In this document: positions 7,001 to 17,800 of the stretch, piece after piece
Layout: every line of letters begins with the position of its first letter
How positions within the stretch are numbered: position 1 is the first letter of the stretch
Source of the DNA: Paragordius varius
Lineage: Eukaryota > Animalia > Nematomorpha
Length of the DNA stretch: 64,000 nucleotides
Reading direction: 5' to 3'
NCBI GenBank assembly: GCA_964247055.1
Contig: OZ176054.1
Coordinates: forward strand, 6,386,001-6,450,000
Notes under the pieces: model-generated
What the model was told of the DNA's origin: nothing
Database searches by the model: none
What the model saw: only the letters and a program-made list of their open reading frames with translations
Translations under genes and position numbers: made by a program

Positions 7001-7136
7001 GAAAAACTTCAAATTCATATTGCCTTGATTGTTTATCTTTTTGTGCCTTATTTCATAAATTAAATTGATCAAAAAATTCGAATTGGGTGGCAAATGTTAC
7101 ATTCATAAGCAAAAGACTTGACTTAAGTGTTTTAAT

Positions 7137-8071
7137 CAGGGCTTGAAACCGGAACCGGAACCGCATGGAACCGGAACCCGGTTCCTGGGATTTTAACAAG
7201 AACCGGTTTCATTGGGATGGAACCAACGCGGTTCCGGTTCCGCTTTCCCGGGAACCACCCCGGTACCGATTCCAAAATTTCAGGAATCACCCCGATTCTA
7301 CCTATAAATTTTTAGGAACCAACCCGGTTCCAACCGTTTAGAAACCAATCCCGGTTCCACCCCCTTAATTACTGGTTCCCATATGATTATTTTATTATTT
7401 AAATTTGATCGTACCACTACATATTAAATACTTCAATTTTACCTAAAACTAAGCGCCTTATATTATATTAGCGATACTCTCTCAATTTTGGATGATTCGG
7501 CTGTTCTAAAAAACTAATAGTCATACAAGATTATTTATAAAACATATGTTCGTACATATAGGTCCCCGTTGAAAGGATTTTTTTCACCCTTAATTTTATA
7601 TAGAAAGACCAGAGAAGCAGTTTGACCAGCGTATTGCTTGGTCCAATAATTTTCAAAGTTAAATAAAGAATTTTTTAGATGCCATACTTAGTTTAGCACT
7701 CATTATATACATTTATACTTATACATTTTCCTATTATATTTTTATTTGATTCATTTATTATGCTAATTTATTTCACTATACATTTGGCAAATTATATAAT
7801 TGTTCATATTTTGGCTGGATTATTATTATAATAATTTTGTAAGAAAATCATTTAATCAAAAGTCAGGACCCGAAAATACCGGTTTTAAATATAAAGAACC
7901 GGTTCCGAAACCGCTAAATTTTTAAAGAATCAACGGGGTTCCGGTTCCAAAATTTCAGGAACTGCCCGGTTCTATTTTTAAATTCTTAAGAACCAACACG
8001 GTTCCGGTTCCTCTTGCTCAGGAACCAACCTGGTTCCGGTTCCACTTTTTTTGAACCGGTTCCAAGCCCTG
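7137..8071. mobile_element. hAT-type non-autonomous element with subterminal GGAACC/GGTTCC arrays
   Basis: TIR CAGGGCTTG(A/G)AACCGG. Perfect 8-bp TSD GTTTTAAT at 7129-7136 and 8072-8079. Related fragments near 11360-11520, 19760-19815 and 27130. Confidence 0.85.
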
Positions 8072-8757
8072 GTTTTAATCATCCAAATGTACACTTGCTG
8101 GCTTAGGTAAAATTGCTCAACTTGCCACGCTTGAATTATAAGTCAAGTGAGATTTTTTTATCACCCCACTCTATATAGTTAATTCTTTAACGTGAAATTG
8201 GTAATGACTGGACTTTACATGATTCTATGTGTTAAGTGTGCTATTTTACCTATTCTGAAGAAAGCCGTTATCTGTAATTAATGATCTCAAAGATTTGTAT
8301 ATTAATATACTTTAAATCTCATATGTATTTGTAATTAATAGGATTAAGATCATGTTTTTTGGGGATTTAAATTTTATTTCTTTTCTTAAAGTAAAGATGA
8401 TAAAAAACAACCCTGCATTAAGCCTTTGTTTTAACCATTTTGTTACGCCAAATGAAATTTTAATAGTATATTTTTGCGTGCAGTATAGGCTATCTATGAA
8501 TATTTAAAATGATATTGGCCAAGCTATAAATAGCGGATAAAATATAGAATTTACCTTTAGTTCCTTAGATTATCTAAGGGCAATAATATCAAAACATTAT
8601 GACCAGTTTTTTTATAATGTCACATTATTAGCCATCAATACTCTTCTTACATAGGGCGTGTAATAAGTTAGCATTTTTAGAACATATAAAGTTATAATAA
8701 TTTTTTAGTATATTTTTAAAAAAGGTTTTTATAACCTAATAAATTAAACGTCAAAAA

Positions 8758-11700
8758 ATGGTGCAGCAACAAGAAAAGGATATATCAAATCTGAAAGGTA
8801 ATTCGATTTGTAATAAAATATAATTATTACAAAATAATAATAATTCCTAAAATAGACCAAACTTTTACGGATGAAAATAATCGGGTTAGAAGACCCATGA
8901 ATGCTTTTATGATTTTCGCCAGAACACGAAGAAATGACATTCAAAGAGAAAATCCGAATTTTAGCAATAACAAGGTATTTATAAAATTTAGTTTTTTAAT
9001 CATCTAATTAGAAAATTATTATAATTTTCTGTGAAAAAAAGTAACATAAATAAAGCAATAGGAGTTATTTTAAACTTCAACTCAAATTGTGCAGTCACAG
9101 ACTTTTATATAATTTATGGTTTTCATGTATGTAAACTCGGACAAAAGCTGTTGCCTAACATTATATTATTTCACGATCATTTTTTAATGGTTATTAAAAA
9201 AATATGGAATGTTAAATTGAATTAGAATAAGACTAATTTTCGCAATTATCCAGATTTTATATAACCCGATTCTGCAAATGTATATTTAAAAAAGGATTAG
9301 GTAATCTTAGCTAAAAAATTGGTTGAAATTCCGATAATTAATTATCTGCAAATTGCATAGGTGAGTGTTGCCTTAGGGCAGGAATGGAAATCGTTAACTG
9401 CCGAACAAAAGCTTCCCTTCAAATTGAAGGCACAAGAATTGGATAATATGCATAAAATGTTACATCCAGGTAGAGTTAATTTTCAGTTTATTTTCAAATT
9501 TTCAGTTTAATTTTCATAAATTACATTAAATTTAATTTAAATTCGTATAACCAACTGCATTTATACCAAAATTGCAAAGTTGGATATATATACGAAATCG
9601 ATATGTGAAAACTCCAAGTCAAATAGTTGTGTCGTACTGATGAGTGCTAACAAGCACGAAACTAGTCTGCGATTACTATTGACGAAGGGTTTCACATATC
9701 GTTTATTTCTATTTATAATTTCATTTAATTGTATTTAATTATCCTTTATCATTATATTACGGATTTTAACAACTGTTATTACAAAACATAACCAATCCGT
9801 TCATTACCATTACAATATTATTATTATATTAATAAATAATTATACTTTAAAATATATTTATTTTAAATGATTTACTATTGTTAAAATGATTTACTCTTGT
9901 TATTTTAAAAATTTAACATATATATATATTTGCGGGTTATATTTTAGCCCACTTAATTTTTTTAAAAAATCATATTCAACATTTATTTTAAAAAATGTTG
10001 TCTACAGTCCCAAATTAAAAAAGCTGTAAAAGGCAAATAAACAGCTGATTTACTTAAATAATGGCGAAAATTACTTGCGTATTATGTAAATGGATAACAA
10101 TCCTAAAATTTTAACATATTTATGATCAATTTAAACAAATAAATATAATTTTGACTACTAAATTTATGATATATTATTTGGATAATTTATTAATATTTTG
10201 AATGATAACTTGAGGCCATAAGATCTATAACAGATTTAAATGGGGTAGTTAGCTACCGGAAATGTAATGGAGTTTACTAATTATTTTTTGGCAGTCATAA
10301 TTAATTAACCAATTTGTAAAAATTATATAATTTATTTCTTTTTTTAACTAATGCCTATAGATTATTACTATTCACCAGCTGAAAGTCGTAGAAAAAAAGC
10401 GGAACGAATGTTAGAAAAAATGGAAAATAAAAGTCACCGCAAGCGTGGTCGAAAATTACATTTTACAAATACTGATGAGTCAAATTGTATTTTATTTTTT
10501 ATTTTTTTAATATCATTTAAGAAAAAAAGTTGTACTTAATATAAAAAACTTTGATACTTATGGATGTTAAAAAATATATATATAAGCAATATAATGAGTA
10601 ACTTAACAATTACACATAATTTAACTGAATGATTATTTCCAAAATCAAAAAGATTTTTTAAGAACTGGAAAGATGTTATAAAACCTTTAACTATTATTTA
10701 TATTATTAAAAATTTGGATAGAGAAAATAATTGTCAAATGTAATTGGCACCCATATGCTTTAAAATTATCCATCATATATTTTTCTAAAATGTCATATAT
10801 TTTTCATTCAAAATTAATTATTTTTATAGGTAAGTATAATTTATGAAATTGGGAAAAATAGCAAACATTTTGTCCTTATAAATGACTATTTTATTTGTTA
10901 TAAAAATATTTCTTAATATGTTATATTCCTAGGTAATCAAGCTCGACACTTTTATTTGAGCCCAAAAGTAGAACCAATCACACTAAACGATGAGGTAAAA
11001 GATAGCTTATACTATTTGGAAAAATCTTTCCAGGATTTGGAGAATATTGGAATGACCGAAATAAGCCATTATCCAACGTCGTTGAGTGAAAATAATGTTT
11101 ACCCACCAAATTTTTCATAGTAAGATTAAATATATTATGCAGTTTTCGGAACTTAAATATTCCTTTCTTTCCTGTACAGATTATCATAATGTTTTAATAT
11201 ACACTAAACCTATGGTTATATGAGTCTTTTGATTTGTGGGTATGGAAAAAATTATATTTGCTCATACTCATTTAATAAAGGAAATTTTAATTTCAGAATG
11301 TTATTAAAATAGAAAAAAAAATATTTAAAAATCAATTCAAGAAAAATGGTAACTATAATAGGAACCGGTTTGAAATTTCAGGAAGCGATTCTGAAACCAT
11401 TAAATGTAAAACAAACTCGGTTCTCGTTTCTTTCAGAGAACTACCTAGCCTGCTTCTGATTTCGTTTTGAAGTTTTCAGACAAAACCTGATTCGAGTACT
11501 AACTATCCAAGATCCGCCTGCTTTCAGTTTTATATTTTGGTGCCTGGTTTGCTAATATAGAATTTTTTATCTATTTAAAAATCAACTTTACAATTAAATT
11601 TTGCATCTGAACGTTAATATTACGCGTTATGCTAAAAAAATATTTCTTGCATTTAGATAATCCACAAAATTTACGTTTAAATATTTTGTGATAAATCGAA

Positions 11701-14877: not shown

Positions 14878-17800
14878 ATGTATTATTTGAAACGTGACAA
14901 AAAAGACGAAGAGTCGGGTATGTTTTGGTAAAATATATTAGGGCCTGGCTCCAATATGTTTTACAATATTGATAAAACCATGGTATTACAAGAGGTAAAG
15001 AAATTTTCTATATAAAGGCTCGAATATTTAATGAAACACCAATAAATGCAAAACGGTGCGCTTTGGTTTTAACCAAAATTCTCTATATCATTAATCAAGT
15101 ATAGTTAATATCCTTAATAATTAAGAATCAAACGATTGGTGTGCGGGAAGCGACGGAGTGCTTTTTTGCTACGACAAAGCTGTTTCAATCTAAAGATGTA
15201 ACTTTTAATTATAAATTGTAGAATTTATTAAGACGGCTAGTATATCTAGTTATTAAAGATATGGCACCATTAGCGCAAGATGTAATTATTGTTACGAGCA
15301 GGTTTGTGCTTTTATTTTATTTTTTTCATAGTTTGACCAAAGACATGACTGGAAAAGAAGATTTGTATCGAGGACCCGCTATAAGAACGCTATGTGCCAT
15401 AACTGATGTAAATATTTTTTTATCTGTGAATATTTAAATACATTGTGAAATTCCAGTTTTAATTTGGAAAAAATAAAAAATAAACTAAGTTGTTAATTTA
15501 AATCGTCGTAAATAGGGAAAAAGTATTTTTCTCATTATCATTAATAAGCTAAAAATCATTTTTACAGGCTAAATATAGATGGCCCCTTATAACTTGATAT
15601 AACCGCTGAATATAAGTCAAAACATCTTCATTTAAATCAAAAATAATGGATCTTATATGACACTAGTTTGCAACTGTTGGTGATTTTGCCAATAATTTTA
15701 ATTTATTTTTGTTTATTTCAAGGTCATAATATGCATATTTAATACCCCAAAATTAATTATATTTAAAAAACTTGAATTTTTAAGTAGGCCACTTAATTTC
15801 GATTATGAAATATATGTTAAATCTTTAGCCAACAATGATACAAGCTATTGAGCGATATATGAAACAAGCTTTGGTTGATAAAAATTACACGGTATCCAGC
15901 GCTGCTCTAACCTCTTCTATGGTAGTTTTTTGTTTATGTTTTCTGACACCAAATCGTTCATAACTATTACTATAATAAAAACTGAATATATATATATATA
16001 TATATATATATGGATAACTTAAAAAAGAAAAGATTTGTTTTAATATATAAATCCTGATTTTATGTGAACGATTGTCAAATATTGAAATGCACCTGTTTTT
16101 ATTATCTGTCTAACAAGATCATGGTCTATTTTAAAAAAATAATGAATTGTTGTCTTTATAATAAATTATTTGTTTTTTAGGTTTATTCTGTATATTTTAA
16201 ATTTTACCATAAAGTTTATACATTTTTTTCTATTTATAATTAATATAAAAATATTCATATAAAGATATTTTTTATTAGCATCTCTGTTGTAAGAGTGTTC
16301 ATGGTGTTGATATTGTTAAGAGATGGGTTAACGAAATTCAAGAAGCCGTAAATTCAGATAACAATATGGTTCAAGTAAGTTTACGATAATTATTCCATAC
16401 ATAATAGTTAAATTACTAAATAATTTTAAACTCTATTATATAGTTTATATTTTTGAATTAAATTAAATTTGACTATGATAAAAAAAATTCAAATAACTTT
16501 CATTTAATATCATGATTAATTCAATTTTCAAAGGGTTACAAACTATACTAACTTATAACACAGTATGTATTAATGGTTTATTTCACACTATAATTGGGAA
16601 ATTTGCAACACATTAGTGTATTAAAAAAGAAAAAATTTATTCAACATTTTGTTGTTTTTATACACTACTATTTTGAAAATCGCCCAACTATAGTGTAAAA
16701 TAAGCAGCCATTAAAATGTATACTGTATTTTTTTATATAAAAATATAAAAAAAGTTTGGGCATGTAAATTAAATAAAATAATGTTAACAATTATTTTTAT
16801 ATATTTTTCAGTATCAAGCCCTTGGATTATTGTACCAGGTTCGAAAGACGGATAAATTAGCCATTTCCAAAATATTCTCAAAATTCCACAAAGGATCTCT
16901 CAGATCACCCTACGCTTATATTTTATTGGTAATTTTTTTTTATTGAAAACTAACCAATTTAAGTTACCTTTTTTAACATTGGACAATACTGTTATGCATT
17001 TTGGTAAAAATTGTATACATAGGTTGAATGTTTTAAGTAAAAAAAACCCTTTTTACTAAATAATCTACCGTAAACTAAAAGATTTAACTTTAAAAAATAA
17101 ACCAGAGTTTTCGTTGACCTATTTTTCATTTGCCTATTAAGATCCTTAAATATGGAGTTGAGGGTTCTTTTATATTATACCCCCCTAATCATTTAAAAAA
17201 TGTAGCGAAGATTTACGCTTATATAAATCTTAAGTTGACCCTTTTTATAAAAAATGGGGAATTTATATTTTCTTAATTCTTTGCCCATTTGTAGATTCGA
17301 ATGACGTGCCAATTAATAATAGACGATGCCTATAACGGGTAAAATTTTTTATATACATAATTCTTAAATTATTTTAAGGACTTTTATAATTATTAAAATT
17401 TTTATGGGGGTTGCGTTTTATTTTTAAATTTTATAATGGAAATTGTTTACAATCTAAACATTTAATTAATTACTATGGATTAATATTTATATTGTTATTT
17501 TTTATTAAATTTTTTTATTGAATATTACCATAATAGTTTTGTGAATATTGGTCCATTTTACGAGTTCTTGGAATCCTGCTTGAGACATAAAACAGAATCA
17601 GTCGTATTCGAAGCCGCCTCATCCATAGTTGAATTGCACAGTGTTAAAGAGTATATTTTGAATTTATTTTTTTTATTTAAAAAAGTTCCTTAAACCTTTA
17701 TGCTATTTTATAGTGCCTTTAGTTAGGTAACTTATAGTTTACTAAAAACTCTTATTTTATGGTATTAATTTATCTAAATTTTGCTTAAATGTAGTAATTA

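Follow-up and report, generated by a model that had tools for sequence, protein, structure and literature searches.

An intronic hammerhead motif in a Paragordius varius HMG-box gene is very likely carried by a young copy of a dispersed retrozyme-type repeat

We analyzed 64,000 nucleotides of the Paragordius varius genome (assembly GCA_964247055.1, contig OZ176054.1, positions 6,386,001 to 6,450,000 of the forward strand; hereafter the window), in which an HMG-box (Sox-like) gene carries a hammerhead ribozyme motif in its intron 3. The motif sits inside a repeat copy of 348 bp; the repeat is dispersed through the genome and lacks an open reading frame (ORF). Very probably, the hammerhead is part of an ordinary copy, young, truncated and probably at a dead end, of an animal retrozyme without long terminal repeats (non-LTR retrozyme), a non-autonomous passenger of Penelope-like elements with no role in the host gene.

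The motif (core, helix II, and minimal helix III at 9637-9667, forward strand) was recognized by direct reading, a sub-threshold match to the Rfam model Hammerhead_HH9, and pattern statistics. On the forward strand, the 5' strand of helix I (GUCGUA, 9631-9636) is followed by the CUGAUGA core (9637-9643), a 5-bp helix II (GUGCU and AGCAC around the loop AACA, 9644-9657), the GAA core (9658-9660), the palindrome ACUAGU (9661-9666), C17 (9667), and the 3' strand of helix I (UGCGAU, 9668-9673). The type I core is complete: C3 U4 G5 A6 N7 G8 A9, G12 A13 A14, the A15.1-U16.1 pair (A9661-U9666), and H17 (C9667). Three helices surround it. Helix III is reduced to one base pair closed by the tetraloop CUAG (A-CUAG-U), so that the palindrome is also a potential dimer interface. 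Helix I is open, holding the 5' and 3' ends of the RNA, and its 6 bp are extended, with bulges, into a hairpin of about 110 nt (9596-9704, forward strand; -39.6 to -41.9 kcal/mol). The 121-nt stretch 9590-9710 folded as a single long hairpin (-41.9 kcal/mol, z = -5.8), and none of 200 shuffled sequences was as stable. By its core and helices, the motif is a type I hammerhead, with the predicted scissile bond between 9667 and 9668.

A first-pass annotation of the window, made from its letters alone, had described the intact core, the 5-bp helix II, the palindromic helix III, the hairpin of about 110 nt as helix I, and the same cleavage position. Our reading recovered all of these details, and the computed positions agreed. 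It had also placed the motif among the minimal type I hammerheads of the Penelope and retrozyme type, as the comparisons below bear out, and had noted that the window has a single copy and that no Penelope ORF adjoins it; our searches of the window confirmed both points.

The gene context was established by reading frame and by comparing each exon separately with the HMG_box profile. Exon 2 (8856-8974, forward strand; RPMNAFMIFA...) matched profile positions 2-29 (E 3.5e-6), and exon 3 (9361-9469, forward strand; acceptor ...catag ending at 9360) matched positions 32-66 (E 4.6e-5). Exon 3 ends in ...CAT CCA G; an in-frame stop follows at 9508-9510, and the sole in-phase donor ahead of it lies between 9469 and 9470. 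The acceptor ...ctatag ending at 10360 joins exon 3 to exon 4, which starts at 10361 with AT TAT TAC TAT TCA CCA, and the junction reads HP-D-YYYSP, the usual end of a Sox-type box. Since the donor is in phase with exon 4, intron 3 spans 9470-10360 (891 nt, forward strand, by reading frame and phase) and the ribozyme lies on its sense strand, as the annotation had proposed; frame, phase, and HMG_box matches agree. The cleavage position is 198 nt past the donor and 693 nt ahead of the acceptor.

The motif does not stand alone, a fact that the first-pass annotation could not see. A BLAST comparison of 8000-11500 with 19 other copies showed sharp ends at 9471 and about 9818-9831, with 93-99% identity. 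The repeat copy (segment A, unit positions 1-348) thus occupies 9471-9818 on the forward strand; it is the only copy of the repeat in the window and contains no ORF of at least 60 amino acids (aa). It is a solo monomer, without the 103-nt segment X that links units in tandems; it is truncated and probably a dead end. Compared with the majority of 21 other copies, a sample biased towards those resembling it, the window copy differs by one private 3-nt deletion just past 9704 and by one polymorphic site; its ribozyme and hairpin are identical to the family majority. At about 1% from that majority, the insertion is judged to be recent and not a conserved element, and on this comparison its reading as a young insertion holds despite the sample bias.

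The assembly comprises 110.6 Mb, and the contig has 26% GC. A search with a 181-nt query around the motif gave 406 first-look candidates, on all large contigs and on both strands, and the scored matches were 93-100% identical; we take the copy number as at least 400 candidates, with identity given for the scored matches only. A stricter ribozyme pattern had 171 matches genome-wide (71 forward, 100 reverse) and none for a reversed-pattern control. The 31-mer of the window (9637-9667) was the commonest form among the 100 listed of these 171 matches. The sequence common to the loci is limited to 350-550 bp and has no ORF. From these loci we reconstructed a unit of 451 bp, made of segment A (348 nt) and segment X (103 nt) and followed by the TAGAGTT that opens the next unit. 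Ribozymes on the same strand were spaced 443-446 bp apart in four cases among the matches listed, and 455 bp apart in the search with the 181-nt query. Close pairs on opposite strands, again among the matches listed, were head-to-head (-/+) in 16 of 16 cases and never +/-, and arrays were short, with up to three ribozymes.

We examined 17 independent sites, a census biased towards copies most like that of the window. Eleven had an inverted, 5'-truncated arm, three were partial direct tandems, and three were solo copies. Target duplications of about 8-13 bp were found at most of them. The 3' ends of the copies group around CCATTACAA(TAT), varying by a few bases, and no poly(A) or simple-repeat tail was found there. 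At one locus (L016:651-2582), a composite insertion of the repeat splits an old fragment of a Penelope-like ORF, with an 11-bp target duplication (ATTATGGATAT), and is therefore nested in it. The tandems, the head-to-head arms, and the 8-13-bp target duplications together give the signature of an animal non-LTR retrozyme. Penelope-like insertions are known for 5' truncation, partial tandems that act as pseudo-LTRs (pLTRs), and an adjacent inverted truncated copy (PMC8557442). The 17 sites show this architecture, and autonomous endonuclease-bearing (EN+) Penelope-like elements occur in the same genome.

Folded from cleavage site to cleavage site, the unit RNA (GC 27%) had an energy of -94.4 kcal/mol (z = -6.9), and both of its ends are predicted to be paired by helix I. 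The family has tandem units with one type I hammerhead each, low GC, and no coding capacity, as retrozymes do; primer-binding sites and polypurine tracts were not searched for.

Animal non-LTR retrozymes are an already described kind of element, and the repeat of the window is a family of that kind. Type I hammerheads of animals occur in tandem non-LTR retrozymes of 150-450 bp with low GC and no LTR (PMC7229834), and a 2026 preprint derives retrozymes from Penelope-like pLTRs and finds them depleted in introns (bioRxiv 10.64898/2026.07.22.740005). Like the elements of these studies (Cervera and de la Pena 2020, PMC7229834; Li, Clavereau and Pollet 2026, 10.64898/2026.07.22.740005), the units described here are short, poor in GC, and ORF-less, with a type I hammerhead; they form tandem dimers and multimers as well as many solo monomers, share the genome with Penelope-like elements, and are predicted to bring the ends of the unit RNA together. 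Unlike them, they form short arrays among the matches listed, and many copies have Penelope-style inverted arms. The window copy lies inside an intron, whereas vertebrate retrozymes are depleted there (10.64898/2026.07.22.740005).

The family also resembles the minimal hammerheads of Penelope pseudo-LTRs (Cervera and de la Pena 2014, PMC4209133) in its 1-bp helix III, its small palindromic loop, and the dimer that these imply, as well as in high copy number, near-identity within the genome, and insertions as partial tandems and inverted copies. It differs in that no reverse transcriptase or endonuclease ORF adjoins the repeats or lies between them. With a 6-bp extended helix I and a 5-bp helix II, the motif is nearer to canonical metazoan type I hammerheads than to the Schistosoma minimal hammerhead, in which helix II has 7-8 bp and helix I has 4-5 bp. 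Like newt satellite 2 and Schistosoma Sm-alpha, it is a genomic repeat some hundreds of base pairs long with a type I hammerhead; those sequences form long satellite arrays or copies like short interspersed elements, whereas the present repeat is dispersed, with Penelope-type junctions and few units at most. Multimeric transcripts of newt satellite 2 and Sm-alpha are cut by their type I hammerheads, and a dimer is needed where helix III is weak (PMC7229834; PMC4209133).

A cycle consistent with these observations would begin at source loci where 451-nt units, with a single hammerhead apiece, follow one another in tandem. Within a multimeric transcript, two hammerheads may pair through the palindromic helix III and excise unit-length RNA, whose ends the long helix I would hold together, giving linear or circular RNA. 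A Penelope-type reverse transcriptase with a GIY-YIG endonuclease would then copy the unit RNA into DNA. The marks left behind would be partial tandems, arms inverted head-to-head, and short duplications of the target. In the HMG-box gene, an insertion of this kind would have hit intron 3 right at its start.

The junction at this site is exact. The window copy starts at intron position +2: exon 3 ends in ...CCAG, the donor G is 9470, and TAGAGTT follows. The copy thus supplies donor positions +2 to +6, and the donor reads GTAGAG. The sequence past the 3' end of the copy, TATTATTATATT (window 9813-9835), would alone give a GT donor, and the old donor was therefore probably G followed by TATTAT. 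From these sequences, the first bases of the element (TA), or a microhomology of 1-2 nt, appear to have rebuilt a GTA donor. The insertion would survive in intron 3 because these first bases restore the donor and the remainder is spliced out. Donors of nearby short introns (GTATGT, GTAAAG, GTATAG, GTAACT, and GTTTGT) vary, so GTAGAG falls inside the local range.

With no fewer than 400 insertions in 110 Mb, and on the assumption of about 1e5 introns, we estimate that chance alone would place about one insertion within 3 nt of a donor. The 5' junction fell at unit position 1-2 (TAGAGTT) in 5 of the 17 sites (L012, L013, L019, L005, and window 9471), far more often than random 5' truncation predicts, and both solo copies that start there (the window copy and L012) lack a target duplication. 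The template RNA may have a favored 5' end, which would account for this recurrent junction.

The rest of intron 3 (9832-10360) returned only itself in a whole-genome search, so the intron is older than the insertion; intron 2 is likewise unique in the genome. Gain of the intron by means of the element was rejected, given that the other 529 nt of intron 3 are unique and that the sequence after the element would alone give a GT donor. An empty-site allele or a paralogue of the locus was searched for in the assembly and not found.

A partner that could mobilize the repeat was sought among the Penelope-like elements of the genome. First-look candidates numbered 302, in several divergence classes (67%, 41%, and 33% identity among the more divergent), with many inverted pairs and open frames of up to 788-893 aa. 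An EN+ ORF with both RVT_1 and GIY-YIG was found as a 485-aa frame. A GIY-YIG locus with a 787-aa frame had no Pfam match at E 0.01, yet it was 99% identical to the frame with RVT_1 and GIY-YIG; Pfam detected RVT_1 in the truncated 485-aa copy and not in the full 787-aa frame. One young EN+ family (G000:C1:4914348-4916770, which is L028:6346-8709, minus strand; G000:C3:3780591-3782045, L029) has copies 95-100% identical, a 788-aa open frame, and inverted pairs. Two neighbors of the hammerhead copies were rejected as partners. The Penelope-like fragment beside the copies in L016 is the older element split by the repeat, and a long interspersed element (LINE) 1.1 kb from a ribozyme of the second family described below (L062) is merely adjacent.

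Several results weigh against the reading of the window copy as a Penelope-mobilized retrozyme. No target-site duplication was found at the window copy, unlike at most other copies. No hammerhead was found in three copies of the young EN+ family, by pattern, by Rfam (E up to 5), or by a relaxed core scan of the 150-nt 3' region, and the 3' end of that family was no more similar to the hammerhead repeat than shuffled sequence. An autonomous Penelope-like element with a hammerhead or a shared 3' end was not found; the comparison covered one family, examined end to end. As no matching partner was found, Penelope mobilization rests on insertion architecture and co-occurrence. In Rfam scans, no match reached the gathering score over the whole 64-kb window, and in a genome-wide scan the best Hammerhead_HH9 match had 38.4 bits, again below it. 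A permissive scan of 9300-10000 gave Hammerhead_HH9 at 9626-9677 on the forward strand (26.7 bits, gathering score 52, E 2.3e-4). In this alignment helix III is almost deleted; the models expect a longer helix III.

The lack of an Rfam family at gathering score would also suit a chance match in an AT-rich intron. We consider this reading refuted, its likelihood being negligible: the pattern of core and helix II matched once in the 64-kb window and not at all in 100 window shuffles, the reversed pattern gave no match against 171 in the genome, and in a second family, changes on both sides of the pairs preserve helices I and II. LINE reverse transcriptases are far commoner in this genome, with 1712 first-look RVT_1 candidates and a 934-aa ORF carrying Exo_endo_phos and RVT_1; the strongest RVT_1 matches come from apurinic-endonuclease LINEs and not from Penelope-like elements. 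Together with the missing Penelope-like partner of matching sequence, this would fit a hammerhead-bearing non-autonomous retroelement moved by non-Penelope machinery, such as that of these LINEs. The copies, however, have no poly(A) or simple-repeat tail, their partial tandems and solely head-to-head arms are a Penelope-like hallmark and not one of target-primed LINE insertion (PMC8557442), and hammerheads of the palindromic minimal type occur in Penelope-like pLTRs (PMC4209133). We therefore regard LINE-type mobilization as unlikely, although it is the least improbable of the alternatives.

The annotation had offered two views of what the ribozyme does in the gene: that cleavage of the pre-mRNA competes with splicing and tunes the HMG-box factor, or that the motif is a neutral relic. 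The second fits an ordinary repeat copy. The first, whether the motif acted alone or as an ACUAGU kissing dimer, could draw on the intact core, identical to the commonest form of the family, on the sense-strand position within the intron, and on the many loci with the same palindrome that could provide partner RNA. Against it, the insertion diverges by about 1% from the family majority and has hundreds of counterparts in either orientation, so nothing points to selection at the intron 3 site. Hundreds of copies in random orientation, with no conservation at the site, are what the annotation itself had named as refuting a regulatory role; short of a cross-species test, this is the situation found, and tuning of the host gene is not supported. 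To our knowledge, only fast-cleaving ribozymes placed in introns have been reported to impair splicing. A helix III of 1-2 bp with a palindromic loop is reported to impede cleavage of the monomer, so that dimers are needed; in vitro, the Schistosoma minimal motif alone showed no detectable cleavage and axolotl monomers cleaved weakly (PMC4209133; PMC7229834). The single monomeric motif in the pre-mRNA would accordingly be expected to cleave poorly or not at all. In the nearest-neighbor model, ACUG of the core is paired with the palindrome in the monomer's minimum-energy fold (-39.6 kcal/mol), and the catalytically compatible fold (-31.5 kcal/mol) lies about 8 kcal/mol above that; this gap is indicative only, as the model ignores tertiary contacts. 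A cofold of two hairpins was uninformative, any long hairpin being able to form an extended duplex, and nothing found here supports cleavage in trans dimers with transcripts of other copies. Regulation by cleavage is thus very unlikely, and slightly less likely still is the idea that the young copy is a segregating allele that alters the HMG-box gene's output, either by weakening the donor or by cleavage of the pre-mRNA as a kissing dimer (ACUAGU) with abundant transcripts of other copies. Under the latter mechanism, if true, a developmental regulator would be tied to the amount of retrozyme RNA. We infer that the retrozyme copy has no effect on the gene.

The conserved intronic hammerheads of amniotes, Hammerhead_HH9 (RF02275) and HH10, offer a further comparison. 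They are single-copy and deeply conserved and have a stable helix III. The window motif shares with them the hammerhead type (I) and the location, on the sense strand of a protein-coding gene's intron, and HH9 is its best Rfam model. Unlike them, its score is half of the gathering threshold, its helix III has 1 bp, and it belongs to hundreds of young, near-identical copies, and so lacks the single-copy state of a domesticated hammerhead of the HH9/HH10 kind.

A second hammerhead family was present in the genome. About 18 of the 100 matches listed have a helix II of GUCC...GGAC, and in them ACGCGU takes the position of ACUAGU as the palindrome (examples are L066:4300-4626, L064, L065, L067, and L062:5580-5741). 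These elements are short and ORF-less and are older than those of the first family (72-93% identity). The two families have only the core of about 33 nt in common, and the second, too, is predicted to form a long imperfect hairpin with the ribozyme at its tip. In the alignment of the two families, 98.5% of cells were paired, against 23-53% with the partners slid, and four pairs had changed on both sides; with six distinct rows, this is supportive and not statistical proof. The retention of fold and helix III palindrome in unrelated sequences is what selection for a dimer-forming hammerhead in source copies would give, and the alignment supports such selection.

Three other features of the genome were observed. 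A coding region of the window (14918-15331) has a run of 23-31-nt introns (for example GTATGT...TTAG and GTAAAG...AAAG) in whose donors little is conserved past GT(A/T). In the stretches 7100-7420 and 7980-8094, upstream of the HMG-box gene, ORF translations of both strands are rich in EPEPGS or GTGTR-like repeats, a composition that suggests another repeat or low-complexity element. Elsewhere (G000:C2:1.86-3.16 Mb), reverse-transcriptase ORFs of 1148-1236 aa, more than 30 of them and all with the same RVT_1 score, follow at intervals of about 14 kb in single-strand blocks; they seem to form a large array of a retroelement that is site-specific or was amplified in tandem.

The hammerhead of intron 3 matters little for gene regulation. 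It indicates that a well-formed intronic ribozyme can be mere cargo of a mobile element, and that a whole-genome check is needed before a role is proposed. The insertion at the donor site, tolerated through a rebuilt GTA, is a small example of how loose donor requirements in this genome let insertions survive. For the biology of these elements, the family offers a clean, young example of an animal hammerhead retrozyme whose junctions are of the Penelope type, from a genome that is small and AT-rich, and the two families, with the same fold and different sequence and palindrome, could serve studies of how such elements are processed and copied.

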